Assembly (NCBI RefSeq): GCF_964204645.1
Contig: NC_134031.1
Span: 2,542,001-2,606,000 of the forward strand
Direction: 5' to 3'
DNA length: 64,000 nt
Origin: Tubulanus polymorphus
Taxonomy: Eukaryota; Animalia; Nemertea
Part shown: piece by piece, positions 34,271 to 59,271 of the stretch
Numbering within the stretch: the first letter of the stretch is position 1
How the letters are laid out: each line of letters opens with the position of its first letter
Notes under the pieces: model-generated
Database searches by the model: none
What the model was told of the DNA's origin: nothing
The model's input: the letters and a program-made list of their open reading frames with translations, nothing else
Translations under genes and position numbers: made by a program

Positions 34271-37200
34271 TTATTTTTTGATATTGTCATTACTGGAGAC
34301 ACTGTCATGAGTTTCATTATTTTTTTCCTGTACATTTCCATCATTGGGTTGATTGTCGTGTTCTGACTCGAATCCTGGTAAGCCGGCATGTACTATCGAA
34401 TCTGTATCGCTTGCAGGGTCGTTCTTGTCGGCGTCTGCCGCCAATACGTCGTCAAGAATTTCGGAGCTATCATCGGTTGTAACAAAACCCGGTTGTATAA
34501 CCAGGCTTGCAGGTTTCTCATCAGAGGACTGTGGACTATCTGTGGACTGTGCCTTTACATCGTCATATATAATTTTCTTTATATCGTCATTTGTGACAAT
34601 CAGTTTTGGTTTAAACATAGAGCTGTGGCTTGATTGTTGACTTTCAGCATCTCCAATGGATGTACCTAAAACTTCGGGCAAACTATCAACGTCTATTTCA
34701 AACGTATCATTGGTTGAATCATTTAATGTCTGGTTATTGTTATCTTGTTTTGGATATTCCAGAATAGCATTTTCCGATAGAGCTTCGATGACTGAAGGAA
34801 CCGAATCAGCATTGATCGAACGAACATCTGTATTTTGCAAAGCAGTGTTCCGTGATTCTGAAGTATCTTCTGGATGGTGTTTCTTTATCCCAGCAGTAAC
34901 ATCAGACAATTCATTTTCATCGTCCATAACTATAGTAAATGTTTGAGGGCCGTTGTCATCGATTTCATCAATCGAATTTATGGTATTAGTTATGTTTTCT
35001 ACCTTGCCATCAAGAACGTCAGAATTGTCACCATCCCGTACACCATTAAGAATGTTTTCGAGATCTTTAATGGGAGAAACAGTTATGACCTTGTGATTTT
35101 GTCCATTGTCAATTTCATTGCCCCTATTTTCACTAGTGGGACTATGTGACGATGTGGCGGTTGTGACCTCGTCACTTAGTGTAGTTGTGGGAAACTGTGA
35201 CGTCGTAGGGTTTGTTGTAGATGACTGACGCGTAGTAGAAGGACTCTCTTTGGTATGCACTGTACTAGAAAGAGGCTTTGTGGATTTAGTGCTACTTGCA
35301 TCCATATTAGTGGTTAGGTTTTCCAACTTTCCAACAATAACTTCAGAATCACCATCTTGAAAGCCATTTAAGATGTTTTCGAGCTCTTCTATTGGAGAAG
35401 CAGTTGTGACATCGTCATTTTGTCCATCAGTGTTCACCGCGGGTTTACCTGCTTTTATTTCATTGTCTTTGTTTTCGAAACCAACCATCTGTACAGTAGT
35501 GAGGCTATTTGAAGATGTGGTGGTAGTAACCTCGTGATTTGATGTAGTTGTAGGAATCTGTGAAGTTGTAGGGTTTGTTGTAGATGACTGATGCGTAGTA
35601 GAAGGACTCTCATTGGTATGTGTTGTACTAGAAGGAGGCTTTGTGGATTTAGTAGTTGTTGGTTTAGTGCTACTTGCATCCGTAATAGTAGTTAGGTTTT
35701 CCAACTTTCCATCAATTACCTCAGCACTACCATCTTGAAAGCCATTTAAGATATTTTCGAGCTCTTCTATCGGAGAAGCAGTTGTGACATTGTTATTTTG
35801 TTCTTCAGTGTTCATTGCTGGTTTACCCGGTTTAATTTCATTGTCCTTGTTTTCAAAACCAGCTATCTGTACGGTAGTGAGGCTATTTGAAGATGTGGTT
35901 GTAGTAACCTCATGATTTGATGTAGTTGTAGAAATCTGTGAAGTTGTAGGGTTTGTTGTAGATGACCGATGCGTAGTAGAAGGGCTCTTATTGGCATGTG
36001 TTGTACTTGGAGGGAGCTTTACAGGTTCAGTAGTTGTTGATTTCGTGCTACTTGGGCCCGTAAGCTGTCCTTTCGTAGTGTGACGAATAAATTGTGTAGT
36101 TAGTAGTCTATTTCTGCGTGGAGATTCAGTTTGGTAGTTTTCTAGCAAATTTAAATCATTTTCAAACGAACTGCTTTTGCTCTCGTCTTCAGTAGTAGTT
36201 GGGTGTATATCTGAATTGTATTTTAATGAATCTGAATCATGTGAATCGGTAGACTTTTTAGGTGCAACAGTAATACCAGTTCCTAAACCGTTTTCATCAT
36301 CTATTACGATCGTGAATGTGTTCACACCAGTATTGTTGTTATCGATCGAATGAATGCGGTCGTTTCTTAAATCAGGTTTTGCAGCATTATCGTCAGGATT
36401 TCCATCTAAACCATTTAAGATATTTTCCAGTTCTTCTTCAGGTGATACGGTTGGGAGAAGTGCATTTTGTTCACCATTGTTCAATGTTGGTTCGGCCTTT
36501 TCTGTATCGTTGTGTACGTTAATGGAATCATCGATTTGATCATTGAAGAAATCGTGGGATGATTCAGTAGTACGATTGGCAGTAGGTGTAATGGTAGGAA
36601 CCTGGGTGGAATAGTTAGTCACAGGTTTACTAGTAGATGACTGATGTGTGGCAGAGGTCTTTTCATTTGTCGCAGTGGAAGTACGTAGTGAAGTAGTCAC
36701 CGGTTTAGTTGTAGACGACTGATGCGTGGCAGAGGTCTTCTCATCTGTCGCAGTGGAAGTACGAATTGAAGTAGTCACAGGTTTAGTTGTAGACGACTGA
36801 TGCGTGGCAGAGGGCTTCTCATCTGCCGCAGTGGAAGTACGAAGTGAAGTAGTCACAGGTTTAGTTGTAGACGACTGATGCGTGGCAGAGGTCTTCTCAT
36901 CTGTCGCAGTGGAAGTACGAATTGAAGTAGTCACAGGTTTAGTTGTAGACGACTGATGCGTGGCAGAGGTCTTCTCATCTGTCGCAGTGGAAATACGAAG
37001 TGAAGTAGTCACAGGTTTAGTTGTAGACGACTGATTATGAAGAGTGTGAGTATTGTTTAGTGGAACGTATTGGCGTGTCTTTTCTGTAGCAGTAAGATGT
37101 TCATCTGTATTGTGTATCGCTGTTGCTGAGGGATCAGAAATATCTGGGCCTATGTTGGGTCTTTCCTTTTGGTCATTTATATCAAATGTGAATGATGCAG

Positions 37201-40200
37201 GAATATCGGTAGAATTCCTTGTATTCATGACGTTCGCCAAATTTTTGTCGACGATTTCATGATTGTTTTCATCGGTTAAACCATTTAAGATGTTCTCTAG
37301 GTCTCTAGGAGAAACTGTCGAATGCGACTCATCTTGTTCAGCACGCGTGGTTCCTGTAATAACTTCGGGCCTCTCCTTTTCATCGTCTATCACAATGGTA
37401 AAGGTTTCAGGGGTATTGTAATCGATTAAAGAAATGTGTCCACTTTCAGGACTATCTTCGGTTTCCGAATTGTGTACGATATCATCATCCCCGTAATAAT
37501 TTAGTTTATTTACAAGTTCTTGTTTCGGAGAGCTGGATTGGAGATCATCAATGTAATCATCTGCTTTTGTTTCCGAAACATTTGATGATGTTTTGGAATT
37601 ACTTTTGTTGTCACTTGTTCCAGTAGGTTTAGTGGAAGTGAAAGTGGTTTGAGTTGGTTGATGCGTAGTTTGTCTAATGTCAATTGACTGAGGCGGTAGT
37701 ACTTCCATATTATCGACGGCATCTGGAAATTCAGTCCAGAGTATTCCTTGGCTAAGATTAATATCCTCAACAGTTTGCGAAACGGTAGCAGGAACATCTA
37801 GATTGTACGTTATTGAATAATATGAGTCATCTAATGAATTTACGGCCAAGTTAACCTTTGGAGACTCATCACCCTTGATGGTAAAAATCTCGCCACCAGA
37901 ACCAGAATGTGAATTTGTCGGTGTGTTGATATTGGGATAGCTTATTTCTTCTTCCAAATCATTGCGACTTTCAGTATGTGACACTAAAAAGAAAATACCA
38001 TATCTTATTCAATCATTCACCTATTTACAAAGAGTCTTTGATTCCATGGAAACTTTCAAGTGTTACCCCATTCACACGACGGACCATCGTAACCATCAGA
38101 GCACTGGCAGACAGGTCCTCCTTTCTCATCGACGTAGCACTCTCCGCCGTTTTCACAATGGACGGTCAAACAAACATCTGTATTTACATATGTAGAGTTA
38201 GCGACAGAACGAATACAACATCTAGGAATGTTACGAAAACGTTTATATATTTTCATGTAAAGAGGACTATTATTTGCACATATACCACATTCGGATAATG
38301 CTCGACAAGCATTCGCTTTGAAGATAAACCCGCGGTTACATTCACAACCAGGTGTTGACGGTAAATCACACTCCTTTTTGTTAACTGCACGCTCCGTGCA
38401 AGATGGCTGACATCCTGACATCCTTTTGTTAAACGTGCTATTTTCTGGACACTGCATTCCTGTAAGGACCACGTACATTAAAATAAACACTTAACAGTAT
38501 GTTGTATCTCACTAGGATCTATTACACGTACCACATCGCCGAGAAGTTCTCCACAGACCTATTTCGTAGCCGGCTGCTTCACATTTAGACTCTGCCCCTT
38601 CTAAAGCCCCGCATACCATTTGCATGTCCCCGTTCGTTACAGCTGCATCGAAAAGACAGTCGTCGTAATTTCCCTTGATTAATGAGGTAGAAATACAAGA
38701 AGCGAATGGACCAGTCGAGTTCGTTAATAAGCCGCAGAATTCATCTGATTTGTAACTGACATCATTTATCGAGCCCATTTGAATTAGATCGGCGGCATAA
38801 CTGAAAGGTGTGTAAAGTAGTTCATGTACCATAGTGAATATTGTCAAAGAGTATTGACGCTACCTCATTCCACACTTACTAAGTTATCTCGTGGGTATCA
38901 CGCCTTTTTCTAGTTTTAGATTCAACGTTTGTGCATCTGAAAATGTTCGCCATACATACATAAAATGCTAATTTTTAACGAATAAAGAATGAAGCAAATG
39001 TATATTCTGGATTGCTGTTGAATTCTTCGACTTACGATCCTCTTTCGTGACACTTCCCTTCATCAAGACATTGTAGGAAATTGTCATCATATGCGTTATT
39101 GTTACAATTCCCACATAAACCAGTTAGACTTCCATTGTAACTATTGGTCTGAGAATGATTATCTATAATGACTAAAATGCGATAGTTAGTCTGAATGGAA
39201 ACTGTGACTCCACAGCTGACGATTCTTGCATGCACCACTGAACCACTAGTAACTACTGAGATTCCTCCAGCCGTTAGAGGGGCAGTCCACCTTACGCCAT
39301 TTACCTGTAAATATTTGAATTGGAGATTTCAGCTATTAGATCAGCGTTGTGAGAATGCCAAGAAGGATCAAGTAGACTCTACAATAGTGGGAATTACCAG
39401 AATATGTCTTTTCTCATCAATGGCAACGACATAGCCGTCTAATTCGATTTGTACTTCAGAAATATATGATCCAGCGATTCCACTTTTTACGGGCGAGTGA
39501 ATACTTGTGATACGAAATGCACACGATCCGTACGTATTGCCAGCATATTCAGTCAGTATATATCGGCATAAGCTGCCTTGAAAGTCGAACCTCTTTCCAT
39601 CAAAACTTGTGAAATGGGGGTCACCATTTATAAGGCATTGGCCCGAACACGAATTGGCTGCAATTCACATCAAATGGAAATTGAAGATACAAAATATGAA
39701 AGGGAAAATATTGATAAGTTCATCAATTACGCATCTTACCCAAACTATCAGAAATAGGATCAATTCCAGTGACATTAGTTCTTGTAGTAACAGAATCCAT
39801 ATCATTTGAGTGGTTTGTCGAAATCGTAAGAGTTAAGGCAACACTGCTTGTGCTATTCGCGACATTCCGTCCAGACCCTTCCGGTCCTGCGTCGGTTGAG
39901 TTAGAATTATTTGAGATCGTATTCGAGCCATAATCATACGTGGTGTGGCTGTTTTCATCCTCCAAAATGAGAGTTGTTATCTGGTCCATATTTTTGTAAG
40001 TATCATCCAGGGCCAAATAGGTTTCCTGGTCTGAAACTTCATAATCAGTAGAGGAATGATTATCCTGATATTCCATTTCATACTCGCCGGAGTTTGGTAG
40101 TGGTTTTGTATCTTGCTTTGAAAACCCACTAAAATCGCCATAACCAGTTGAGCTTGATGTCGGTTTCTGTGGTTCTTCTAATTCAATATTCGTAGGCTTT

Positions 40201-42481
40201 CTATCAGAATCACCAGAGTTTGGTTCTTCTAATTCAATATTCGCAGGCTTTTTATCAGAATCACCAGAGTTTGGTTCTTCTAATTCAATATCCGTAGGCT
40301 TTCTATCAGAATCACCAGAGTTTGGTTCTTCTAATTCAATATTCGCAGGCTTTTTATCAGAATCACCAGAGTTTGGTTCTTCTAATTCAATATCCGTAGG
40401 CTTTCTATCAGAATCACCAGAGTTTGGTTCTTCTATTTTAATATTTGTTGGATTTCCATCAGAATCACCAGAGTTTGGTTCTTCTACTTCAATATTCGCA
40501 GGCTCTCTATCAGAATCACCAGAGTTTTGTTCTTCTAATTCAATATTCGTAGGCTCTCTATCAGAATTACCAGAGTTTGGTTCTTCTAATTCGATATTCG
40601 TAGGCGCTCTATCAGAATCACCAGAGTTTGGTTCTTCTATTTTAATATTTGTTGGATTTCCATCAGAATCACCAGAGTTTGGTTCTTCTACTTCAATATT
40701 CGCAGGCTCTCTATCAGAATCACCAGAGTTTTGTTCTTCTAATTCAATATTCGTAGGCTCTCTATCAGAATTACCAGAGTTTGGTTCTTCTAATTCGATA
40801 TTCGTAGGCGCTCTATCAGAATCACCAGAGTTTGGTCGTTCTAATTCGATATTCGTAGGCGCTCTATCAGAATCACCAGAGTTTGGTTCTTCTAATTCAA
40901 TATTCGTAGGCGCTCTATCAGAATCACCAGAGTTTGGTCGTTCTAATGCGATATTCGTAGGCTCTCTATCAGAATCACCAGAGTTTGGTCGTTCTAATTC
41001 GATATTCGTAGGCGCTCTATCAGAATCACCATAGTTTGGTCGTTCTAATTCAATATCCGTAGGCTTTCTATCAGAATCACCAGAGTTTGGTTCGCCTAAT
41101 TCAATATCCGTTGGATTTCTATCAGAATCATCATAGTTTGGCTGCGTTTTAGCATTGGCCTTGGTTTGCTTTGAATCATTAGTTGAAGTTTCTAAATCAC
41201 CACCCCCACCGATTATCTGGGCTGTACTAAAATCATAAACATCAGTAGCGATATGAACGTTTTTATCAGAAAAAAAACCTGGGGTAGTTGGATTATGGTT
41301 TTTGCTAGATTTCATGGTTGGAACTGCTTCTCCGATGCTTTCATCACTACGAAATAGACTGGCAGTTGTAACCGTTTTTGGGATTGAATTATCATTATCA
41401 TTGTATTTTCGGTGCAAAGTTCCCACGTTCAATTGTGTTGGTAATTCAGCAGAAATATCAGTTGGATTACCATTTCCCGGTTCATCATCATTAAAAGTGT
41501 CTTCGTAAACAGGCGATGATTCTGATTTCCCATTTACTAACGTCTGTAACATTCTGATAATCGAAGCGGAGTCACTGCGATCAACATCCTTTTCTTCCTT
41601 GTTCTTAGGATTATCCTCTTTTTTTGTTAAATACTCGCCAAATCCATCGTCAAGATATTCTGATAAAAGTTTTTCCAATAGCTGTAAAAGTCGACTATTA
41701 TTCACGCAGTTCTGATCATGTGCATTAGTATCCGGGTGATTGTTTCTTAAATGCTTAGAAATTGACAGCTTCGTCATGGCTGCTTTTGAGGCCAGGTCAT
41801 AACTACCTGACGTCCGCGGGAATGTTGGTTCTTCTTCGTATGTGACATCTGAACCAAGTCCACGTAGGACCATATTTGATCTGTCGTCGTCAATGCCGAG
41901 TCCACTTGAACCCGAGGCATGAGTGGTATCAATCGACATGTCGCTGTTCGCATTGAGACCGCTGAACATCTGGACATTACCACCCTCACTACTTTCCTTC
42001 GTGATTTGATGGATCGGGTTGGCTACAGAGGTGTAATATATCGAACTCTGTTTACCTACGCGCGGGTTGTAATCAATATGCGAAACACCGTCAGTCAAAG
42101 GGGGCGCAGCATCATCAGTGTCAGTTTGTAAATTGACATCATTCAAGTCACCAGAACCAATAGTTATCTTAGTGAAATCATCTTGTCCTTTTAACACTTT
42201 GTCTTTCGCATTAATTCCAATTTCAATTTCCCGATTGATATCACCAGAAGTAACGTCATCTGCAGGAATTTCATCATTTGTATCAAATTTCTGTATCCAA
42301 AATTTTGTATCGCCACTGCCACTCCCATCGTTATTCAAATTAAAGTCATCAATAGCTCCATGTTTCACTATTTTTTGCGGCGAAATCGATTCATTATCGG
42401 TTCCAGGATCAAACACTGTTCGTTTGAAATCGTCTATTTCAGTATCATCGCTGCCATCGCCGGAGAATTCTAACCAAACGT
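34271..42481 (-). CDS. Mucin/zonadhesin-like module: acidic Ser-Gly repeat region, VWD-C8-TIL-EGF, Thr/Ser-rich tail (C-terminal part of the large secreted locus)
   Basis: Exons (minus) 42481-39740, 39657-39398, 39304-39036, 38936-38880, 38800-38532, 38459-38286, 38177-38067 and 37983-34271 join with consistent phases. VWD: CLINGDPHFTSFDGKRFDFQG..GLCGNCNNN. C8: CGLL..GPFASC..YDDCLFD. TIL: CPENSTF..CQPSC..GCEC. EGF: CENGGEC..CQCSDGYDGPSCE. The first exon starts at a phase-1 acceptor and has no signal peptide. Confidence 0.82.
36615..37036 (-). repeat. Coding tandem repeat, 78 bp (26 aa HQSSTTKPVTTSLRTSTATDEKTSAT), ~5.4 copies
   Basis: Seen in DNA and in the 1237-aa ORF translation. PTS mucin-type composition. 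Confidence 0.9.
40171..41143 (-). repeat. Coding minisatellite, 51 bp (17 aa EPNSGDSDRxPTNIELE), 19 copies
   Basis: Period of 51 nt read directly (TCAGAATCACC at 40204, 40255 and onward). Nineteen units counted in the translation. Confidence 0.95.
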
Positions 42482-43351
42482 CTAGAAAATAAATCCACCG
42501 CAGAAGGTATTTGCATTAGGCACGATAATCATTATGTTTATTTAGTATAGGGGTTATAGATGTAAGCCCAGTGGTAACATAGCATTCATTATGTATTCTG
42601 TATAGATGGATAGGCTAAAGTATAGACAAGAAGATAAGAATTTAGGTTTGTTGAGTTAGAAGTTTTCAATTTGGCTGTTACCTTTATTCGGAATAGAGTG
42701 ACGCCCATTTCTCAAGGATTTTGAAGCAAAAATCGCTATAGTCATTCGTTGAAAAAGTAATCGGTATCAATTTTGAACGGTGATACCACAATGAAACGAA
42801 AGGCAGCTAATTTCCTCTATCATACAAATATTTTTCTCGGTTTGCCTGAAGTCTATATGTAAATCTGTAGTGAACAAGCGTTCGTTCTTCTGTGTCGAAA
42901 ATAATCAGAATTCAGAAAAAATGCGATATACAAGCAACAATAAAACCAACATAAGCGATGGTATACTCCAACAAAAACAACAAAAATAACTTAACATAAA
43001 TTTCTAAAACCATTTCTCTATCTATTTAGGATACTCTTCCACATATAAACGCATCAATGTTGATTATGATGGATTTTCCAGGAAAAGAAGATAAATGTGT
43101 GATGTACGGAGATCATACAGCAGGGAATTTGAAAATTTCATGTTTAAAGTTTCACAAATGGTTAATTGGCAATGCCAACTGAAGCTAGATTGAAATGTAG
43201 TTGGAATTAGTCAATCTCTGCAGTTCCTAGGTAATCCTTGCCCAAATATTCTTAATGCATATACATATATAACACTGGGATTGCAAAAGGTGATTAACAC
43301 TCCAAGTTATCAAAATGGAATGTTTACTACGTGTGTTTGCTATATCGCGTT

Positions 43352-46300
43352 TTAAGTTTTCTTATCATGCTTCGCCTTTGCCCCTCTGCTGTCCAACACT
43401 GGCTCGTTGCTATCAGTAGATGACCGAGTGATTGTACCGTTCTGTGCATCCGATTCATTACTTATCTCAGTGTCGCTATCGTGTATGATTTTCTCTTTGA
43501 AAAATTCAACATTCGTAGGCTCACCACCATTGATCCTGTCGACTTTGATGGCAAATATATCCGTTTCGTTCAGTTGAACATCGGCAATCTGTCCACTATA
43601 ATTCAGTTCATCGTTTTCAGAATCGTTTTTGCCACTGTGAACTGCGAATGCAGTAGTTGTAACAATCTGCTTCATGGTCGCGTTGTCATTTTCCACCTCA
43701 TTTACTTCGACAAACGTACTTGCATCTGTGAGTTGGTCACTTTCTTCTTCCGTGACCTGGATGGATTTTGAATGAACGGCTTCATTTGTTGCTTTGGCCA
43801 GTTTTTTAGGATCTTTCTGCTTTTTGTGATTTCTGCTTCCACTTTTCTTCTTCTTTCCGGGGTTCTTCTGTCTTTTGTTATGATTTTTAGCAACCTTATG
43901 TGGTTTCACTTTCTTACCAGAAAAACTAGCGTTCTCGATCTCTTGATCATGTACTGTATCATTTACAATCACTGAGTCAGATACCTCTAGCTCTTTGTCC
44001 TTAACTTCATCTAACGTTGTGGTATTATGGTTACCAGTTATATGATCACCACTGTTCGGAGCATTATCAAAACCAGCCGGCGGTACACAAGTACATGTCT
44101 CACAACTTAAGCTGTCCATCATGTGCCCATATTCGCAATGTTCATCGCAGTCAAGTTCTTCAATGCTTTTACAGGCAACTTCAACGAGTTCTTTGCATAT
44201 ACAAGAATCGCACCCGTGTTTGTCCTTAAATGAACCGTTTGGACAGGGGCCGCTGTCGCAATGAAGATCAGCGCATGGAACAGGTGGCAACTTAGGTCTT
44301 AAGCATTCGCAAGTCTCACATCCGTTTTCATCTCTTTCAGAACCGTGAAGGCAAGGTCCATCCCAACAGTTCAGGTCTAATTTACAACCTTTACAAAAAC
44401 ATGTGGGACAACCGTCCGAGTCAAGTTCATAGTCGTTTTGACAAGCATATTGGCAGTTATATTTCGGACAAAAACCGCTATTTTTATTAACTGGTGGCGG
44501 TACTATAATTCCATCAATGACAGGTGGCTGCAACACATCTGAGCACTGACAAATCACGCAGCCGTATTGATTATGTTCAAACCCTGTATCGCAGTCCAGT
44601 TTACAGGTGTCAATCGATTCACAAATGAATTCTGGAGGTGACCTACATCTGCAGGTTTCACAGCCAGATCTGTCAAGGAACGATCCATGAATACACGGTC
44701 CCTGGTCACAATGCAAGCTAGGACAAAGATCACTAGGAATCTCTGGTCGTTTACATTCGCACGTTTCGCAACCATTTTCATCTTGTATCGAACCATAAAG
44801 ACAGGGGCCATCCCAACATTTGTAGTCAGTACATGCACACTCGCAAGTAAGACAATAATTATTATCGTGTGCGTATCCATTGGTACATGTTCTGTTACAC
44901 TTTAGCATGGGACATTCATTGATACAATTACACGTTTCACAACCATTTCCATCGCTTTGGTAGCCGTTTTTACAAACACTCGGGCATGTATGCTTTTGGC
45001 AAATCTTCTCTACCACTCCCGTGCAGTTACAAGTTTCACAGCCATATTCATCTTTAACGCGCTCAAGAGGGCAGCTATTTCCACATTGTAGATCTGCGCA
45101 TTTGTGTTCTTCTGCGTTACATTCGCATTTACTACATCCAAAACGATCGACGACATAACCACGAAGACATGCACGAATACATTGAAGAGCGGGGCATTCG
45201 TGGTTCCCACTCGAGATTTTGCAAGCACACATTGGACAACCTGCGCTGTCAGTAGTGAAACCATAAGGGCATCTTTTGTTGCAGTCCTTTGTTGGTGGAC
45301 AGTTACTACCAGGTGCTCTAAGGCACGAACATGTCTCACAGCCGTTTACGTCCAAATTTGAACCGTGCAAGCAAGGGCCATCTGGACAGTGAACTGTTGG
45401 GCAAATGCACTCGCATGTTTTACAGCCCTCATTGTCAACCTGATTTCCTAATTCACACTTCTTTGTACATTCTGGTAATGTTGGACAACTCACGGACGTT
45501 GCGTTTCGACAGAGGCATATTTCACATCCGTACATGTCAACCTGATAACCAGTACTACAGGATTTGTAGCATTTGTTGATTTTCGATGTATCACAGATGA
45601 CCTCAGGTGGTTGCTGACATTCACACGTAGGACAACCTCGTTTGTCGTGTTTTGAGCCGTATTTGCACGGCTCCTTCTGGTAGCACCGATGGCTTGGACA
45701 TGTTTCCATCTCACCTGAAAAAGAAAAAAAGGGAAAAAATAACATCATGCATGACATTGTTCACGTTTTCCATTAATTTTTCCACTTCAATCTTTTCCCA
45801 GTGTTTTTAGCTAAGTAATCAGAATTTTTCACCTTTAACAATTGTTTGATTATTTTCTGTAAGTTCTGCTAGTTTGCTACTATTGTTGTTTTCTTGTGAA
45901 AATATCGCATGCGATTCAACGTGAAGATGTGCTTTTGTAGACAAAGCATCGTTGTGTTTAGAACTCTTGGACTTTTTAGCGTTATGGTGCCGCCGTCTTC
46001 TTATTTTTCTTCGCCGTCTTCGGGGCCGTTTTCTAGGTCTTCGATGGTAGCTTCGGCGGCGATGTCGCTTTTGTTTTGTATGACGACCATCGTTTTTCTT
46101 GCTAAGTTTGTTTTTGTTATTGTGGAGGTTAGCGTTAGTACTGTTTGAAATATTGATAGCAATTTCTGAAAAATGGATTTTCAAAACGTGTGAAATAAAA
46201 TTCCTTTCTAAAGACTTCTAGAGTTTCTTTGAGTATTTTTCATATTACCGTGGATTCAATGGTTTTGCCAAAATATCAGATAATTTATCAATAAGAAAAG

Positions 46301-49300
46301 GTAGATATGGCATATGTGATGTATTTTCATGAAAAACAGTACTTTTTTGAAAAAGCTTATTTACCGCTTTGCTCGATACATGCACAAACTGGGCAACCGA
46401 ATTCGCTGCGAAACCCACTATCACATCCCAAGTCACAATCCTGAATCGATGGACACGTTCTGTGGCATCCTGATTGATGTTTTTGTTTTTAAGAAAAAGA
46501 TAAGTACTGGCTATCAAAATTACAACGTTTCTGATCATCCAGAATAAACATTTATGGCTTGTGGTCATATGTACGTAGGTTTTAAGTTTGGCTTTTCGTA
46601 TAACTTGTTGGAATGTGCGGAATGAATGTTTGTGATTAGTACATACCTTCGTTTAGTCCGTAATCGGGCATTAGACAAGTGCAGGTCATGCAGCCGGTGA
46701 ATGCGGAGAATGCAAAACCAAGCGGGCAGTAATTCGGACAACGATACCGGCATTCATCATCTAATGTAAATATGTCATGCAGGTCATAACTACATGCGGT
46801 TAACAAGCTAAACAATTACATCAAACCTTGGAATATATAAAACGATTGATGGTCCATTGTCAAACTAAACTACATGAACTGGTATTGGATTAATGTTGCG
46901 TCTATCATGAACAAGCCCCACTCACTCTGCCTCTCTACTCCTTCAAACTCGATACCGATTAAGTCGATAAAACGCTTGCCTAGGTTAATGTTTTCTGTTC
47001 ATTGGCATTCCTCGGCCTTTTTTAGTCTAGATCCGAAAAAGTTTGATGGAATGCTACCCTGTCAGTTTTCTGACAAGGTAGTAAAAAAGCACTATCACTA
47101 TTCAATCTTGTCCTAAAGTCGTGGGCTACATTTTATATATCGGAAATGGTCTACTTTGAGTAAAAGGAATCCAGATGATGACAGAAGAAAGGTGAAATCC
47201 AGAGGAAATGAAAATAAGATTAAGACGTCAGTTTCCCGAGTGTGTGCATGAGTTTATTGAAGTGCACGGGGTGCATGCAGTACATTAGAATCAATAACAC
47301 AAGGCATTGATAAGGATAGAAAGGTTTCATATCATACAATAAATAATCGTCTTTAAAGTAAAAACAAGTTCATTTAATCACAGTTATATCACAACAGATA
47401 CGATATCTTTAAAAGTATCAAATCACATGCCAACTGAAGAAGTGACAGTCCTACTTCAGAATTGTCGTCTGCCAAAGTTCACCATGCAAACTCATGCGTT
47501 TCGATTATAAACTGTTAAGTAATTACCGTTGGTCTGTCTTGCTATTCCTGGCCAATTACATTCACAGATAGCGCAACCTCGCTCGTCCAGTCGGTTTCCG
47601 TAAGGGCAGTACATATAACACACCGGACCACATGGTTTACCTGAATAACGATGATATTTCATTTGATTGCAATAAATAGAGGGGTAACGTCCCGAGAATT
47701 GTGCAATCCGTACTAACCGTCGCTGCCAATGATTGGCGGAGAGAATTGCGCTAATTCTTTTGGCTGCAAAATGAAGAAATTCAAATAATGCCCTAGCCAA
47801 ATAAAGGGTTTAAACATTCAGAAATTAACTTTGATATATTTCTTTACGTTTACTTAGTAAAATTCACAAATGAAATAGATGCGAATGATAAGATTTCCTA
47901 ATATTGTTTATTAGTTTGTTTTATTAAGTATGGAATAAGTTAAGTTACCGTTCGTTTTTTCCTTTTGGAGTTGATTACGCTCAGACAGCTGCGATCGTGT
48001 GGAATGTCCACCAATTCCGTAGGATTCACGCAGTAATCGCCAGTCATTTTAGCCTTCATCTCGTTCATCTTGGTCGCGTCGATTGTTTTGTCTCGGCACA
48101 TGAGAACGACAAGTTCACCTCCTCGGGCACAAACACCCGCACTTATACTCGAATAACACTCGTAAGTGATAATGCAATCAAAATCCGCATACACTATCTT
48201 TAAATCGCCTGAAATTACGAAAAGAAAAAAGTTTTAAAAAGTATAAATTGGCCTAATCATATAAATCTTCCTCAAAGCTATGTTGTTAAGCAATGCAATT
48301 GTAATTTGGTTGAATATGCATTCCAATCTGTGCTGAATGAAAAGTCCCACACCAAAATCTACGAATAACAGTTTTCATTCAACCAGCAGCTGTTGGCTAA
48401 AAGCCACCATCAAGGGAAATGTTCATCGCTAGTTTTCCAGATCCAGATTTCCTGCGCAAAAACTCACCTCGAGTTGGAGTGCCACGCATAACGACAGTCA
48501 TGTGACCTGGAGCGTCACCTACCGGGTTCAAGTGTAATGACAGGGGTCCCAAACACTTCCCTTTCCTGAAACGATACAAGTCATTTCTCGATACTCATAA
48601 CTTTGAAAACTAACCTTCTTTTAATCATTTGGTTAACAATGAGTGACAATAGCGGGTTCGAGTCCTGCTGCCTGCTTACAGCGTACGGACAAGAACGTTG
48701 TCATAGATGACGTTAGGGGAGGTGTCTCATTCTATGACACCGTCTCCTCGTGAAGTTAGTCTTGGAAAACCAACATCCGAACCTCGTAAAGCAAGATATT
48801 TAAACAAATATATATATTTTGTAAACGAATACTTTGAATATGTAATACCTGATGAAGCTGTAAGAAACTTGAATGGAGCCATCGCGACGCATTGCCAGAT
48901 TTGATACACTGGCATCCCATGTAAGTCCACGCCACAGACCGTGAGTTCGACTAATCACGTACCAAGTTCCCATAAGCTGAAAGATATATATATAAATATG
49001 GCTATGATAGTTAAACACTTCGATTTGAATTCCCACCATACTGAAAATATTGCTCTGGATACGAGAACGATATCAAAACTAATACGAATTCATTATTAGA
49101 AATATGATTTATGGCCCCCGTGTGCCGCAATAGGTGGCAGGGTTCATAGCAAGTTGAGTTCATTTTTTTGCAGAAGACGCTTAAGCTCGGAACGCGAGGT
49201 TCAGATAAAAGTAACGCTCTTTTTACGCTCTTCATCCGCGCGATTATTGAGATGTACAGGTGGTTCGAGGTATTCTGACGTCATCATTGTGCGAACACCG

Positions 49301-50782
49301 CAAGCAGCTGGAAACGAGCCCCGACTTCACGCAAAAGCTAGAGCTAATAAACGTACCGTACCCACAATTATTAGATTACCTAGCGAAAGGAGATTCGTGG
49401 TGAAAATCGTACCCTGCGATGGCCACAAAAACAGACACTTTGTGGCAAATAGAAAACTATTTTCATTGGAATTAGATCTTTTTATTGTATCGCAGTATAT
49501 TCGAAAAGAGGACCCCCCCTTCCACCTCCAAATTCTCTGGTATACAAATTGCTTAAAACGAAAATGAATTTATACACTATATTCTCTATTTGTGAAAAAG
49601 AGAGAATAATACAGAATCTAATCATACAGTGATTATCTCAGTTCTGTAGGGTATCAATCAATATCAGTGTCATTCACTAAAAAGGCTAGTCATCCGATAA
49701 ATGCCTATCTTCAGGTCGTCCTCACACCACAGTTCATATTGCCGGTCAATCGATAAGTTTTGTTCAGCCATTTCGTAAAAGGTCGAGTGAAATGACCGGA
49801 TACAAAAGGCCTAGGGTTGATAAGCCAGCCAGAAACACCCCCGCAATATTAGCCCCCCATTGTTGAATCTTGGAGTAATCCGAATGATTGACGACGAATA
49901 TATGAAGATTGAATATATGAAGCAAATCAACAATGATATTCATATTATCTTATTGTTTGCAGTTGCGCGAGCGTCGGATGGGTTCAAGTTTGGCGAAGTT
50001 CGTTATCCATTCTGGTAAAAATTGAAAAATCGGTGATTTCATTCATGTGAGAAAATACTGTTAAAACATACTCCAATATATTCAATACAAATATTATGCA
50101 CCAATATTGATACCTTTATCATCATAATGTCGAACTATAAGCTATTAATGATGATGACTCCTTCATTGAGAAAATTGATTGCAACATTGATTGCAATGTA
50201 AGTAAATATGTAGTTATTCCTGACCTGAAAGTTTATAGTTTCTGCGGGAGTTTGGAGTGACGTAATGAGCCTAATAGCATAGCAGCGTGGTATTTACTGT
50301 TTTGGGGCTCAAACGTGACTTACTGGTCACGTATCCCGACGTTCGAACAATGGTAAATCATGACCAAATTCCCTTTTAACTCAATTCGCTATTATTTTTA
50401 AAAATGAAAAACTCATTCCAGTATCTATTAGATCATCATAATATGAGATCAAGAACTTATCATTTTGACCATCGCTTCATTCAAATTCCTGATTTCTTAG
50501 AATACCTTTTTCAAATTGACCAATGCGAAGAGGTACTAATTTCGGATATAATAAGTTGAGCCAAATTTTATCATTGGACAGAAAATCTTTTCTGAAATGT
50601 TTTTGTAAGATTCGATTAGGAAATAAAGTAATACAAACCGATTCCGTGTTGATTTCACGTTGCGGAACAACATCTCTCGGTGGACAGTCGGTAGATCTCT
50701 TGTGTAACGGATGCGCCCGAATCACCGATTCGCTGATAAGTCCAACGAAAACAAACATAAAAACATATCTAATAGTAGCCAT
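43352..50782 (-). CDS. Secreted lipocalin + 19 antistasin-like repeat protein, 1234 aa (N-terminal part or short isoform of the large locus)
   Basis: Exons (minus) 50782-50639, 48976-48849, 48565-48468, 48208-47949, 47763-47718, 47640-47527, 46760-46647, 46469-46365, 46165-45833 and 45714-43352 join in frame (3705 nt). Signal peptide MATIRYVFMFVFVGLISESVIRA. Lipocalin motifs INTESLMGTWYVISR, IVYADFD, VLMCRD. Six-Cys C..C...C..G...D..GC..C.C repeats (antistasin). TATATA at 50830-50835. Confidence 0.82.
48629..48670 (+). mobile_element. tRNA-derived SINE remnant in an intron
   Basis: TGGTTAA A-box-like sequence and AGCGG-GTTCGAGT-CCTGCT T-arm/B box. The rest is not tRNA-like. Confidence 0.3.
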
Positions 50783-53440
50783 ATCGCTCGTGGTGACGAG
50801 CACCGCCCGGCTCAGTCGCGTTTCAATCCTATATAGACAAGACCAATACGTGAATCGATATAGCCAGCAGCTACAAGTCCAGTTAGCCGTATGATTCGTG
50901 GCTTTGTTTCGAAATAACAAGATGACACCCGAACGACGAGTTCATTACATTCGCGCCGATTAGTTTTGACCTACGAACCGAGGTGGTTACTGTTATCAAA
51001 CGAGCAGCGAATTTCACCACTAGAACTAATCACGCCAAAACTATAAGCACTCTGCGCGTTTAGATATTCTCAATCCGAATTCTCCACTTAGAAATATGCA
51101 ATGTTTTTGCCGATTCAATAAATTCCTGTGAACTTCTGCGCGCGTTGAACTACTTCTGGAAACGACGACTCAAAACAAGCGGTCGTTCTCGGATCTGCTG
51201 CATTATTGTTTGTGGTTCGTTGCACCAGGATGCATTTCGTACACAAACGAATAGCTAATCACCTTCTCCTTGAATTCTTGGAACCTCGATGAAATTGATC
51301 AGGCATTTTCCCAGGTGTGCATGAGTTTTACCTGTGTTTATCAGTACACATGCTAGAGTACAAATTAGACGCGCAGATTGCCGTAATGCGCTCGATCTCA
51401 CGGCTCAATTCTATATATCTTAATTAAATTTCAAAGTCAGTGGTTCTGTAAATACTAAGATAACAGAACGAACATAGAAAGAAAGTAGTATTAGGCAGAG
51501 GTATGAAATAGTATATAGAATGCAATAAACTGTTAAAATGTTGGTTCGGTCCTAAAAGAATGAGAATTTTTTTCGGAATTGGGGAAAGAATGTGTGCGAA
51601 CAATATCCAAATATGTGCAAGGCAAATGTGATATTTAAATCTTACAAGGAATGGTAAGAAATTTCACTAAAAAGTAACTACCCGGTACAAGTAAGGACTT
51701 CAGAGAAAATGCAGGATGTTAAATTCAAGTAGACGTTTTCATTGTGATAACTTTTTACAATGAGAACATCATGCAAGGACACTGATTTAGCATGATAAAT
51801 ATCTTAGGCAGAGAACTCTAGGCTATCGGCGAAAGGTCTAACAAGGCTACAACGCTGTTATATACTACTATCATTATAAATAACAGATTAAAGCACACCC
51901 ATATATGACAGAAATTGGTGGTAAAAATTAACAAAAGATTGACAATAATGATGTATATTTATCATGATGAATAGATTTAAAGCATCATCTACTGTATTTC
52001 ATTTCGGTCCCGGTTCATTTAAACAATCTTCCAACCAACCTGAACCGGAAAGCAACTGATTGGCGCGAGATTTTGGAAATAATTATAATACAAGGTTGTA
52101 GATCAACATTTACATTTTTGGTCGTTTTCCACGAGTAAATATTCCAGAAGTTTAAGTTTTCTCGTTAGTAAGTAGTATGTCTTACAGTCGTCCGTTTGCA
52201 GTCCGCCAGTCGAGCACGTGAATAATCGGCGTACGCGTCCTTCCAGCAATTCCCAACAAATTAACACGTCAATTAAGACAGATTACGTTTGAATCAGAAT
52301 CATCAACGTACGCGATAATTGGTCCATTAAGTGGTTTATGACAACATGAATTATACAGTTTACAGTTTATTTGACAAACTCAAGGTCTACAAATTAGACA
52401 ATATGAGTGAAAAATAGAACATTATTACAAAATAACATAGCGGCGAATGCCGTGTTTACACAAATATTTTAGCAATTTTACTTATAAAGATACATAAATT
52501 ATAAAGTGTTCTGATGTTCTTTGTCTGCATAAGGGAGGAGAATTTATACTGGTTTGGATAAATTGAAAATTTTCTGTCAATGTACTTGGTCTTAAAACAT
52601 CAAGGGTTGGACAACAATATATGTCTTCAGGTATCCGCCATACAGTATTATTATGTGTACTTTTGTTGGTATCATAAAAAATGTACTTTTTGATCTAATA
52701 AACTAATAATAATTTTTATACTAATAACAACCTTTGAATTCTATTCATCTCCGACTGATCGATTACAAAATTGCGCGAACTGATAATTGGATAATATCGA
52801 GTCCCCGTTGATAGAAATGAATAATGAATCAACGCAATAAGCAATAAGTTTTATGCGCACTCCGGATTTGTTGGTTGTAAGAGCTGGCCAATTTTTATAT
52901 GCAATACATATATTGTATATTCATTATAGCAATAATTTGAAGCTATTAAGAGAATAATTTTCTTTGCAATGTATGAAAAACATAAAGCTCAAAGTTTTGG
53001 AATTTTGACTAAACCCCGTCATCAGAGGAACCGAAAATGATTTGGTGAAACTGTCAGAAACAAGATGGTCCAATCATCAATTGTGGGTTATTACTTATGG
53101 ATAGTGTACTAAAGTTTCACTTGAAAATGATAAGCAAATAGTGATAAGATATTGCCATTATATATACGAAATGATTGCATAAACATCATTATATATCATA
53201 TAGGCCTACGTGTAGTTTGGACGAATTCCATATTTTTCAATCGAACGCTTTATTTTTACATACCTATTATGGTTATGCACTTTAATTTTCTATATCCATA
53301 ATTTTTTGCACAGGAAATTCAATTTTGTAATATAGCACAAAGGCGTTGAAGGATAAACACTACAATTCGATGCATTATTATTAGAAATCATCTCACAGGG
53401 GGGCAGGTTGCAACACGGTAGATATCGTCACTATTCAGCC

Positions 53441-53494
53441 TACGAGCAATTATCTTAACTGTTAAGATAATTGCTCTTAAGATAATTGCTCGTA
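53441..53494. repeat. Perfect palindrome with a duplicated arm (MITE-like remnant)
   Basis: GAGCAATTATCTTAAC-T-GTTAAGATAATTGCTC followed by a second TTAAGATAATTGCTCGTA. Confidence 0.75.
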
Positions 53495-53939: not shown

Positions 53940-54175
53940 TGCACACGTACGTAGTTCTGTCGCGTGATAACCTGTTTCACATTTTTGCGCTGAGTGAAAG
54001 TAATCGGTTTCACATTGCGCGAACTTTATTAAGTATAGCGTTAGGGTGATTCACATTTTCGTGAAGTTGTGCCAAAAACCGCTTCACGTTGCAACGGGAA
54101 GCATTGTTATTGCACACGAACCTACTTCGATAACCGAATAAATAGGGCCGCTTCGAACGTAACAGATCATTGTGA
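53940..54175 (+). promoter_or_regulatory. Metallothionein promoter: two MRE cores, TATA-like box, Inr-like site
   Basis: TGCACAC (MRE core TGCRCNC, the MTF-1 site) at 53940-53946 and 54111-54117. TAAATAG at ~54139. TCATT at 54167-54171, ~30 nt after the TATA-like box. A distal TGCGCAC lies at 52854-52860. Confidence 0.65.
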
Positions 54176-54239: not shown

Positions 54240-56682
54240 ATGGCATCAACTAAGACAGGTAATAGACTTGAATATTCAATTCGGTTGAATCTAACTGTAA
54301 CATTATTCTCAGTTCTGGTAGGCCTACCAGGAAGTTAGCACATATACTGTGGTAGATTAATTGTTTGAACATTTCTTGTAGAAACGCTCCTCTGTAAATG
54401 CGGAGACAAGTGTCAATGTTGCGACGGATGTAAGGGTGGAAAATGTGGCTGCGGTGATGATTGTAAATGTTGTGACAGATGTAAAGATAGCAGTAAATGT
54501 TGCTGCGACGAAGGATGCAAGGGCTGCGTTGATGGATGTAAATGTTGCGACGGCTGCAAAGGAGGAAAATGTGGTTGCGGAGACGATTGTAAATGTTGCT
54601 GCGGTTGCTGCAAATCCGAAGGTAAATAAATATTTCTTTTATGTAAATTCATTTTTCATTACAATGAACGTAGACTTCATTCGTTTGAATATTATCCGAA
54701 AATGGAATCATAGGTTTAGAAATACCAGGGAGACATTTTGCTTTGGAAAATGATTTCCATCAATTCTATATATGCATTAGTGGTGTATAACATTTTTTTT
54801 TCGAAGGTGCCGCAGCAAAATCGTCCTGCAAGTGCGGAGACAAGTGTCAATGTTGCGACGGATGTAAGGGTGGAAAATGTGGCTGCGGTGACGATTGCAA
54901 ATGTTGTGACAGATGTAAAGATAGCAGTAAATGTTGCTGCGACGAAGGATGCAAGGGCTGCGTTGATGGATGTAAATGTTGCGACGGCTGCAAAGGAGGA
55001 AAATGTGGTTGCGGAGACGATTGTAAATGCTGTTGCGGTTGCTGCAAATCCGAAGGTAAATTTCTTCTATTTTTTGAATATACATTTTTTAATTTTGGAT
55101 TTAATGAACGTTGACTACATCCGTATTCGTTTGAATGTCATTCGAGGTAAACTGAATAATATGTGTTGTATTTTTTCAGGTGCCACCGCAAAAACGGCCT
55201 GTAAATGCGGAGACAAGTGTCAATGTTGCGACGGTTGTAAGGGTGGAAAATGTGGCTGCGGTGATGATTGTAAATGCTGTGATAGATGTAAAGTAGATGG
55301 CAGTAAATGTTGCTGCGACGAAGGATGCAAGGGCTGCGTTGATGGATGTAAATGTTGCGACGGCTGCAAAGGAGGAAAATGTGGTTGCGGAGACGATTGC
55401 AAATGCTGTTGTGGTTGCTGCAAATCCGAAGGTAGAATTTGCTTTACTCGAACTTATGTTGTTTTTTTTAAATTAACTTTCGCTCAATTCAGTTCAATGT
55501 ATATTCAATATATGAGAATCAGTTTTCAAAATGACTTTGGGTATGAATAACTAAACCAACAAACTTTTTTCTCCCGATTAAGTTTGGTCTTAAACACATA
55601 AAACATACTCTTATAATGAGACATACTGAATAATACATTTTGTTTTGTTTTTCAGGTGCCGCAGCAAAATCGTCCTGCAAGTGCGGAGACAAGTGTCAAT
55701 GTTGCGACGGATGTAAGGGTGGAAAATGTGGCTGCGGTGATGATTGTAAATGTTGTGACAGATGTAAAGTAGATGGCAGTAAATGTTGCTGCGACGAAGG
55801 ATGCAAGGGCTGCGTTGATGGATGTAAATGTTGCGACGGCTGCAAAGGAGGAAAATGTGATTGCGGAGACGATTGTAAATGCTGTTGTGGTTGCTGCAAA
55901 TCCGAAGGTAAATTTCTTCTATTTTTTAAATATACATTTTTTTCATTTTGGATTTAAAGAACGTTGACTACATCTGTATTCGTTTGAATGTCATTCGAGG
56001 TAAACTGAATAATATGTGTTGTGTTTTTTCAGGTGCCACCGCAAAAACGGCCTGTAAATGCGGAGACAAGTGTCAATGTTGCGACGGATGTAAGGGTGGA
56101 AAATGTGGCTGCGGTGATGATTGTAAATGCTGTGACAGATGCAAAGATAGCAGTAAATGTTGCTGCGACGAAGGATGCAAGGGCTGCGTTGATGGATGTA
56201 AATGTTGCGACGGCTGCAAAGGAGGGAAATGTGGTTGCGGAGACTATTGCAAATGCTGTTGTGGTTGCTGCAAATCCGAAGGTAGAGTTTGCTTTACTCG
56301 AACTTATGTTTTTTTTTTTTTAAATTAACTTTCGCTCAATTCATTTCAATGTATATTCAATATACGAGAATCAGTTTTCAAAATGACTTTGTATCAATTA
56401 CTAATCCAACAAACTTTTTTCTCCCGATTAAGTTTGGTCTTAAACACATAAAACATACTCTTATAATGAGACATACTGAATAATACATTTTGTTTTTGTT
56501 TTTCAGGTGCCGCAGCAAAATCATCCTGCAAGTGCGGAGACAAGTGTCAATGTTGCGACGGATGTAAGGGTGGAAAATGTGGCTGCGGTGAGGATTGTAA
56601 ATGCTGTGACAGATGTAAAGGAGATGGCAGTAAATGTTGCTGTACTGACGGAAGCAAAGGCTGTGGCAGCAAGTGTTGCTGA
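54240..56682 (+). CDS. Giant multi-module metallothionein-like protein, 478 aa, 163 Cys (34%)
   Basis: Exons 54240-54258, 54382-54621, 54807-55055, 55180-55431, 55656-55907, 56033-56281 and 56507-56682, all GT-AG and phase 1, total 1437 nt ending in TGA. CxC/CC/CCC motifs, rich in Lys/Gly/Asp. No His, Phe or Trp, one Tyr, no signal peptide. MREs upstream and AATAAA at 56860-56865. Confidence 0.88.
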
Positions 56683-57302
56683 CTAACCGATGAACCGCTT
56701 CGAAAAAACAAATCAAAGCTTTAATATTCTCTGCAAAAATTCCGTTTACACGATATCATACTGATCAATGTTATAAACCCGCTTTTGGAATTAAGAATAA
56801 TTGCAAATTTGTACTGTATATTTGATACTATTCTATTCATGTTTGTAGCGAAAATGCCAAATAAATATGATCGACTATACGTCTTGTAATTCCCTTTAAA
56901 TGAATGGTTTTCAAAAACTGTTTTTTTTTACTCCCGCATAAGTATCATCATGAGGCGGACATGGAAATAGGGATGGGCCGACGCGCATAACGATTCACCA
57001 GCCTTCCTGTTTGAATCCAGTTTCGGATTAGATTACTTACCCATGGGAAGGTAAATATTTCACGACGTTAAGACATCTTAAGACCAGCAATGTATCGTGT
57101 GAACTTACCGTTCGATAGATGGAACTTACCGTTCTTCATCTGCTCGCATATGACACGTATCGTTGGACCAACAAACATACATACGTATAAAGTTTTGGGG
57201 TTGGATGTAACCCCACTATCAGATGATATTCAGATTCGACAAGATTCACATCAGATAATGATTGGTATATCATCTTAAGAAAGCGAATCTAGGAAGTTTT
57301 AC

Positions 57303-59271
57303 CTGAACAAAGTGGAATGTCGCAGAATTCGTGAACTTTCGATTGATCCGTTGTAAAACACCAGGGGGCGGTACTGTGATTAGGGTTACGACAGTGGTTA
57401 GCGGCTGCTAGTAGATCTCCGTCCGGTAGATCGTTCGCGTCAGTGTTATGATGGTGAGGGCTTTGACTAGCCCAATTTTGACATCGTCGTCCGGAACGCG
57501 TCACCGATGTGTGTCCGCTGTAGTCTGATCCCTTTGTCGTTATCGTACATTCCAAAACGTTAGCTTTTTTTGTTTGCAAGAAAAAAAATTGTAGAAATCG
57601 GAAATTCTCTCAATGACTTTCTATATGTTCAAATCGGTTAGGATTTATTTACTCACTAAGGTTGCACATATTGACGTCGCAGTAGTCATATCTCATATCG
57701 GGATCGGTCGTGTAACACCATGGCCCTGCATCGTGGTCAGGATTACGACAGTAATTTTCTGCTAACGTTAAATCCTGTTCGGGAAATGCATTCGCACGTT
57801 TGTAGTGGACGTGCGGATATTGTCTATCCCATCGTTGACAGGAGTGTCCGAGTAATGTGACGTTTAGATACCCCGAGTAATCAGCCCCTTCTGGTGCAAT
57901 TTTACAGTCCAACAGATGCTCCGGGATTCCTAATTATGAGTAAAGAATCTCACAATGTGTGAACGAATCGAAAACGTTTATTCAAAAATTAGAAATATTT
58001 CGGGTAGTTGCTTCAGTCTAAAATGACTTGCAAATAATTGCGAATACGATTCCTAATTATTTCAAACACGACACACATCTCACTTCGATTTACATCTACT
58101 CAATTCGGCTCTAAGAATTTCTTTCAAATCAAAGCAAATCGAGCAAAGGAGCAAAACATATCAACTCGAAAAATGAACGATTAAACTACGGCTTGAATCG
58201 TAAGCGCGTTGTGATACGATATAAGTGACTGGTTGCCTGTCCCGAAGAAAGAGACCGGTAACCAGTCTTCGATACCAAAATATGAAGGCCACTTTCTAAA
58301 AAGGGGCGTTCGAACGGACGAGCCCCCTGGCTACGGCTTGCTGAGATTAAAGTTCGATTTAAGAATTCACTCATAGTCAACTACGACACTGCGAAACTGG
58401 GTTCAATTACACTTCCTGAGTTTGACTACAAAGTTATTTTTTCATAAACTAATTTCCAGTTAACTGCCGATTCGGGCACTTCTAGAAATTTTTCTGTGCG
58501 GCTAGAAGCACGATAAACAGATTTTTGCATTGGCTCATTTTTGTACTCTAGCGCTAGAATTCATAACGTTATGTTTTCTCGCGTATGGACAAAAAAATGG
58601 ACCGATGTAAAAAAATGTTTTATTCTGCATCTAGCCGTACAAAATTGTTTTATTTGGCCTGAATCGGCCCCCATACTTTCGCCGTACAGTATATATATAT
58701 ATATATATAATGAGAATTCTCCAATTTGTTTTCAATACATGGAACATTATTCCGGTTTCCGTTTACAACTAGTTGGATTAGTTCATTTCACCAATATTCG
58801 AGCACTCGATTTCATACGAAAAACCAATTGAACTTTTATTTTCATTACCCACAAAGTGGATGAATCTAAAGCAGTACCAATTGAAAGAAATGAACTTCTA
58901 GTTTCACATTTCAGAGTTTATAAGCCTACCTATAGAATAAAGCATTCAAAATGCGTGCTTGATTTCAGCAAATTCGCAAGAAATGCGGCGTAAACTGTAG
59001 CGCCTTGAGCCCGGTTTTATAGATGGATTTTAACTTTAACTAAAAAAATCCTACGGTTTATTAAACCATACATCTCTAACAGTAATATATATAAAGATGT
59101 CTAACAGTAATAGTTCTGATTAAACCCACTCTCATATCCTCACAAAGAGATCGGAGTAATTATACTAGGTTATAGTTTTTTTTTTTTATCGGACTTACCT
59201 TTGTCCAGTGAAAATGTCGGAGAAACCATCACGTTCAGAATAATCATCACCAAGTTCCAGTGGCGACGCAT
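57303..59271 (-). CDS. Secreted two-kringle protein (plasminogen/apo(a)-type kringles); last exon uncertain
   Basis: Signal-peptide exon 59271-59199 (MRRHWNLVMIILNVMVSPTFSLDK, AG|GTAAGT). Kringle exons 57929-57657 (ENYCRNPDHDAGPWCYTTDPDMRYDYC) and 57563-57303 (NHCRNPNHSTAPWCFTT), all phase 1. A possible terminal exon starts at 57006. Confidence 0.82.

Follow-up and report, generated by a model that had tools for sequence, protein, structure and literature searches.

Does the Cys-rich stretch at positions 54240-56682 of the 64,000-nucleotide window of Tubulanus polymorphus DNA analysed here encode one giant metallothionein (MT), and if so, by what steps did it reach its size? The evidence below suggests that it probably does: the product is best explained as a multimodular zinc/cadmium MT of a palaeonemertean ribbon worm, its gene having grown by exon duplication and its metal binding being predicted. 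The gene model and the growth of the array are considered first, followed by the modules, the predicted function with its rivals, and the place of the gene among multimodular MTs.

Gene structure and growth of the array

Reading of the sequence and splicing at GT..AG sites gave a gene of seven coding exons on the + strand (54240-56682), in which all introns were bounded by GT..AG. The coding part of exon 1 (54240-54258; six codons plus one base) provides the predicted start, with a good ATG context and a GT donor. Exons 2-6 (240-252 nt, 80-84 codons) each encode one module with 29 Cys. Exon 2 (module 1; 54382-54621) was partially covered by RNA-like contigs of run X5. Exon 3 (module 2; 54807-55055) carries a type A linker and exon 4 (module 3; 55180-55431) a type B linker, the donor of exon 4 being used in spliced contigs of runs X5 and X6. 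Exon 5 (module 4; 55656-55907; type A) is joined to exon 4 in X6, and exon 6 (module 5; 56033-56281; type B) has a private Asp-to-Tyr change. The coding part of exon 7 (56507-56682), whose acceptor is used in an X5 spliced contig, holds a terminal 18-Cys module and the TGA stop codon (56680-56682); a polyadenylation signal, AATAAA, lies 178 bp 3' of the stop (56860-56865). All six introns (123-225 nt) are in phase 1, and that between exons 2 and 3 ends in the rarer AAG acceptor after a T run. Bacterial-code ORFs over the region were rejected, since they shadow the exons in another frame or on the opposite strand.

The spliced product comprised 478 aa with 163 Cys (47.8 kDa) and contained no internal stops. 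The original prediction, which had described a product of this size built one module per exon, with five 80-84 aa modules of 29 Cys and a truncated sixth of 18 Cys, was thus reproduced by the seven-exon model and its exon counts. Cys made up 34 % of the chain (163/478), arranged in 44 CxC, 23 CC and 11 CCC motifs. The overall composition (C163 G92 K80 D61 S23 A16 E12) included a single Tyr and no Asn, His, Pro, Phe, Trp or Ile, and there were 86 basic and 73 acidic residues. No hydrophobic N-terminus was found in the product (best 9-residue hydropathy 0.38, with exon 1 predicted), nor was a hydrophobic alternative first exon found in the 3.4 kb upstream. The predicted product, including its predicted exon 1, would accordingly be one without a signal peptide; this and the MT-like composition agree with what had been proposed.

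Exons 2-6 were 94-98 % identical to each other. Within their 74 shared codons there were 15 variable columns, 13 of which were synonymous and two replacement; all 29 Cys were invariant across the modules, and the only length change in the core was of one codon. The modules are under purifying selection, and a chance origin of the spliced frame is ruled out by the identity of the exons and by the preponderance of synonymous over replacement columns. Module-to-module splice joints at GT..AG were present in the two public contig sets mentioned above, X5 and X6. In run X5 coverage was confined to exon bins, which makes it RNA-like, whilst run X6 carries another organism label and is 99 % alike in sequence. 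In one X5 contig the end of an exon of type 4 was immediately followed, across a GT..AG joint, by the start of one of type 7, and in an X6 contig exon 4 was spliced to exon 5, extending 216 letters into the latter. Exon 1 and junctions 1-2, 2-3, 3-4 and 5-6 were absent from the X5 and X6 contigs and are predicted only; no public contig spanned the array, the short contigs showing only two junction types. The gene is live, transcribed and selected, and its full-length transcript is predicted.

Comparison of the copies indicated how the array may have grown. Introns 3 and 5 matched at 119 of 124 positions and introns 4 and 6 at 215 of 222, the linkers alternated between types A and B, and units were spaced 850-852 bp apart. 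Because the introns pair in this way, the linkers alternate and the spacing is about 850 bp, the last growth step was the copying of a two-exon unit consisting of exon A, a short intron, exon B and a long intron, two copies of which occupy 54807-56506 on the + strand. A one-codon indel was out of step with the linker types, being short in exons 2, 3 and 6 and long in exons 4, 5 and 7, and would therefore reflect gene conversion or unequal crossing-over. Exons 1 and 7 alone encode 64 aa with 18 Cys, matching an ordinary two-domain snail MT in both length and Cys number (PMC7826182). The ancestor was probably such an ordinary-sized gene, composed of exon 1 and exon 7, that grew by symmetric phase-1 exon duplication, last as the 850-bp unit. 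As all introns share the same phase, any module can drop out in frame; modules may be gained, lost or skipped in this manner, and the repeat number probably varies between alleles.

The long-intron type (55432-55655 and 56282-56506) was found at several times single-copy depth in runs X7 and X1, with variants at 40-60 % of reads in both. At the low depth of these runs, this hints that some animals have extra module copies or that a paralogue exists elsewhere.

Module anatomy and published metallothionein domains

The 6-Cys unit [CxC]x3[CxC]Cx2C occurred 17 times, three times in each full module and twice in exon 7. The first two units of a module form a 12-Cys block, and the remaining 17 Cys form a back part that holds the spacing CCx3Cx2Cx3[CxC] once per full module. 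This spacing is the core of the vertebrate MT alpha domain (PMC8476144 Table 1); it appeared in 0.3 % of shuffled modules, although the pattern was picked after looking, so that this is not a strict test. Each full module thus has the core spacing in common with the vertebrate alpha domain, whereas the full 11-Cys alpha pattern was unmatched, and convergence is as likely as homology to account for the likeness. The view that the repeat is not a vertebrate alpha/beta domain consequently stands for the full alpha pattern and needs qualification for its core, which is embedded in every module. The end of the module resembles the tail of the amphioxus 9-Cys pattern.

None of the 12 published chordate, echinoderm, mollusc and chelicerate domain patterns (PMC8476144 Table 1, PMC13168519) matched in full, and the Cys spacings of the mollusc alpha, beta1-3, gamma and delta domains (PMC7826182 Table 1) were found in neither exon 4 nor exon 7. 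Since none of these 12 animal patterns matches in full, a new Cys skeleton is plausible, and by its Cys spacing the gene belongs to no published MT domain class.

Single exons were used as queries in the homology searches, the joined spliced protein being used for counting. A search of one module against MT families, as suggested with the original prediction, returned nothing: Pfam gave no family for exons 2, 4 or 7 or for the 12-Cys units, and phmmer gave zero matches for exon 4 among 1.84 billion representatives. Because MTs are polyphyletic, the Pfam result excludes only modelled families. In a local phmmer control, proteins with the whole Cys skeleton scored E values below 1e-8 even when 80 % of the other residues had been randomised; the phmmer result therefore makes it unlikely that the collection contains a protein with the full 29-Cys skeleton, while leaving room for relatives that share part of it. 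A word-index homologue search with exons 4 and 7 found nothing among proteins of 0.55-1.75 times the query length, and PDB sequence searches gave no relevant solved-structure match. Among the weak neighbours in the Atlas were three metallothionein families (0.76), which serve only as a lead. The AlphaFold model of one module had a pLDDT of 45, a value that is expected for a chain folding around metal but is uninformative.

The 12-Cys block was encountered again in a JGI metagenome contig, Ga0315857_102933 (L002), in which an ORF at 184-1434 (416 aa, 117 Cys) contains seven copies of the 12-Cys double unit, in which the 12 Cys all align and which are 55-68 % identical to it. In contrast to the ribbon-worm module, this ORF has longer, variable linkers, is without the 17-Cys back part and is intronless on its contig. 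It had no Pfam or Atlas match and is a candidate for a second giant MT. On the strength of the alignment, the 12-Cys block is a recurring unit, whether by descent or convergence, and its recurrence in L002 supports treating it as a folding domain; tunicate 12-Cys domains bind four ions each (PMC8476144). The suggestion of a new MT domain type is thus favoured by the lack of any full match among the 12 patterns and tempered by the recurrence of the 12-Cys front, which means that it is not without precedent.

Predicted function and rival explanations

Placement in the MT superfamily is by sequence: the product is rich in Gly (92) and Lys (80) and has nearly no aromatic or bulky hydrophobic residues. 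At over 100 aa, with tandem Cys-motif repeats (five 29-Cys modules and an 18-Cys end), it has the make-up of a multimodular MT. The MT reading fits the composition, the predicted lack of a signal peptide, the transcription, the strict Cys conservation and the presence of putative metal-response element (MRE) cores; on the other side is the absence of a Pfam MT family, of a sequence relative, of a solved-structure match and of a full match to any published domain pattern. The two MRE cores (TGCRCNC), a distal one at 53940-53946 and a proximal one at 54111-54117, 129 bp 5' of the ATG, are both on the + strand within 300 bp upstream of the ATG and have the same 8-mer, which occurs three times in the 64 kb. 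Two cores in 320 bp correspond to a Poisson P of ~0.006, and two of 199 windows of 320 bp in the 64 kb held two cores; the core is short and was not enriched window-wide. MTF-1-type factors at these two elements would turn the gene on under metal load.

The cytosolic chain would bind Zn(II)/Cd(II) through its Cys thiolates, forming a series of small clusters that are independent of one another, and each module would hold ~10 ions (~4 in the 12-Cys front domain and ~6 in the 17-Cys back part). At 2.9-3 Cys per ion, the 163 Cys would accommodate 54-57 divalent ions, so that the earlier estimate of roughly 50-60 Zn/Cd ions at the canonical ratio was arithmetically correct as a predicted capacity. 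The 80 Lys and zero Asn follow the pattern of snail Cd-thioneins and, by analogy with the snail rule, suggest a Cd/Zn preference; the Lys/Asn rule fails in tunicates (PMC8476144).

Rivals to this reading concern either the chemistry of the chain or the integrity of the array. A structural high-sulfur protein of the keratin-associated kind, which would form disulfide cross-links inside cells or granules rather than bind metal, could also account for the very high Cys content, the tandem repeats, the apparent lack of a signal peptide and the lack of an MT family match. Keratin-associated repeats are Pro/Ser/Gln-rich pentapeptides of the Cys-Cys-x-Pro type. No Pro was present in the 478 aa, Ser and Gln were scarce and there was no Pfam match; the strict CxC spacing and the upstream MRE cores also speak against such a protein. 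A structural role of keratin-associated type is unlikely because the highly charged chain has no Pro, and we consider the structural explanation as a whole distinctly improbable. Secreted nemertean Cys-rich toxins have a signal peptide and a short disulfide-bonded mature peptide; a secreted toxin was rejected, being unlikely for a product with no predicted signal peptide, and the chain here is a long series of repeats. The dense CC and CCC clusters would also suit a thiol store of another preference, either a Cu(I)-thionein or a redox/sulfide buffer rather than a Zn/Cd sink. Long fungal Cys-repeat MTs bind Cu (PMC7084494), and metal preference is poorly predicted by sequence rules outside snails. 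However, the product is Lys-rich, Asn-free and devoid of His, and the described animal multidomain MTs favour Cd or Zn, which leaves this alternative unlikely.

With regard to the array, repeats this similar are easily misassembled, and the lack of a public contig across them is compatible with an assembly expansion, with separate short genes or with dead copies. In raw DNA reads from another animal (X7), however, mean depth was 12.0 over the array compared with 5.9 upstream and 11.0 downstream, i.e. 1.1-2.0 times the flanks. As depth over the array was not below that of the flanks, the array has not been inflated by assembly, and the expansion named beforehand as a possible refutation did not materialize. 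Private synonymous changes in each copy, distinct intron types, internal exons without a start or stop of their own and the module-to-module splice joints point the same way, making this explanation very hard to sustain. A further alternative, compatible with the multimodular Zn/Cd MT favoured here, is that the 478-aa chain represents one allele or a minor isoform, most animals making smaller in-frame products (for instance, 311 aa and 105 Cys from exons 1-4 plus 7) or having other repeat numbers. The X5 contig with the joint between exon types 4 and 7 carries neither of the private changes of exon 6; its source may be a shorter allele, exon skipping or an allele that lacks these changes. The uniform intron phase, a depth of the long-intron type in X7 and X1 greater than two copies would give, its many variants, and the precedents of Oikopleura alleles with three to seven repeats (PMC8283569) and of exon 2 skipping in amphioxus MT2 (PMC8476144) all favour shorter or variable forms. 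Conversely, exons cannot be phased with short-word contigs when the repeats are nearly identical, the exon 6 changes may just be absent from the X5 animal, and the X6 joint of exon 4 to exon 5 together with the X7 array depth indicates that long alleles exist. We regard this alternative as a serious possibility, albeit not the leading one.

Comparison with known multimodular metallothioneins and neighbouring genes

Measured stoichiometries are available for tandem-domain MTs of tunicates and snails. OdiMT2 of Oikopleura dioica (399 aa, 123 Cys) consists of six repeat units, is encoded by an intron-containing gene and has alleles of 3-7 repeats, which differ between populations and arose by internal duplication (PMC8283569). 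It is similar to the ribbon-worm product in being a giant tandem-repeat MT with a composite repeat and introns, but has 20 Cys per unit rather than 29 and an appendicularian 12C pattern that was unmatched here; moreover, its metal binding has been measured, whereas that of the ribbon-worm product is predicted. By arithmetic from OdiMT2, a seven-repeat Oikopleura allele would encode ~465 aa with 143 Cys, so that the ribbon-worm gene leads by ~3 % in length and ~14 % in Cys. The expectation that it would be among the largest MTs therefore held against the 399 aa of OdiMT2, by a margin that is small when the seven-repeat allele is considered; this ranking covers the cases compared here from the open literature.

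BscMT1 of Botryllus schlosseri (365 aa, 105 Cys) has nine tandem 12-Cys domains, the last of them partial, and binds up to 36 divalent ions (PMC8476144). Its four ions per 12-Cys domain served as the model for the ribbon-worm ion estimate; it differs in being shorter, in repeating one simple domain, in its K/N ratio of 1:1 and in the ascidian pattern, which was unmatched. The 9md/10md MTs of Alinda biplicata (up to 319 aa and 85 Cys) are Cd-inducible and intronless (PMC7084494, PMC11645667, PMC7826182). Like the ribbon-worm product they are lophotrochozoan multidomain proteins with repeated front domains and a distinct terminal one, but their genes lack introns and they are built of beta3 and beta1 domains, neither of which was matched in the ribbon-worm module. 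In amphioxus MT2S/MT2L, the number of domains depends on whether a domain-coding exon is skipped in frame (PMC8476144); these proteins have only two or three domains and a full 9-Cys pattern that was unmatched, and skipping in the ribbon worm is putative. Spider MT3L is a further multimodular MT (PMC13168519).

Giant MTs have evolved time and again, in tunicates, snails, spiders and fungi, and nothing is overturned by the ribbon-worm gene; because they are a known, recurrent class, its size record is marginal. What is new here are the phylum (no study of nemertean MTs was found in the open literature), the Cys skeleton and the in-frame layout of one module per exon. If the product is an MT, multimodular MTs extend to Nemertea and a Cys skeleton is added outside the published domain tables. 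The gene would also be a clear example of how repeats expand through duplication of symmetric exons, and since each module is a single in-frame exon, the question of why some animals evolve giant MTs becomes testable. It is a tentative and somewhat doubtful proposition that this is the longest and most Cys-rich MT and the first from Nemertea, with an undescribed 12-Cys domain that is also present in another eukaryote and a capacity ranging from 6 to ~56 ions by exon skipping or allele copy number.

Several other features were noted in the window. Upstream of the MT-like gene, the - strand (34271-47800) carries a gene of very large size. It contains 15 or more antistasin repeats (43352-45757), tandem repeats of mucin-like Thr/Ser and of acidic type (periods 378, 78 and 51 nt), and Cys-rich exons (38056-38847) that resemble, by eye only, TIL, EGF and VWF-type parts. 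Downstream, two kringle-domain exons on the - strand (57289-57912) are part of a gene that converges with the MT-like gene and lies ~400 bp from the poly(A) signal of the latter. An ORF on the - strand at 50477-50920, possibly a secreted-peptide exon, has an apparent signal peptide, a Lys-Arg site and a Cys-containing stretch, and gave no Pfam match. A long exon of a TMEM26 gene was located at 32671-33636, and a single-exon FMRFamide-receptor-like GPCR at 3048-4109, a member of a family that is expanded in Tubulanus polymorphus; the eight matches to this ORF (43-51 %) were all from that species. Depth spikes in the DNA runs, together with loose ends and joints between opposite strands, marked short dispersed high-copy elements at 57930-58020 and 53439-53476.
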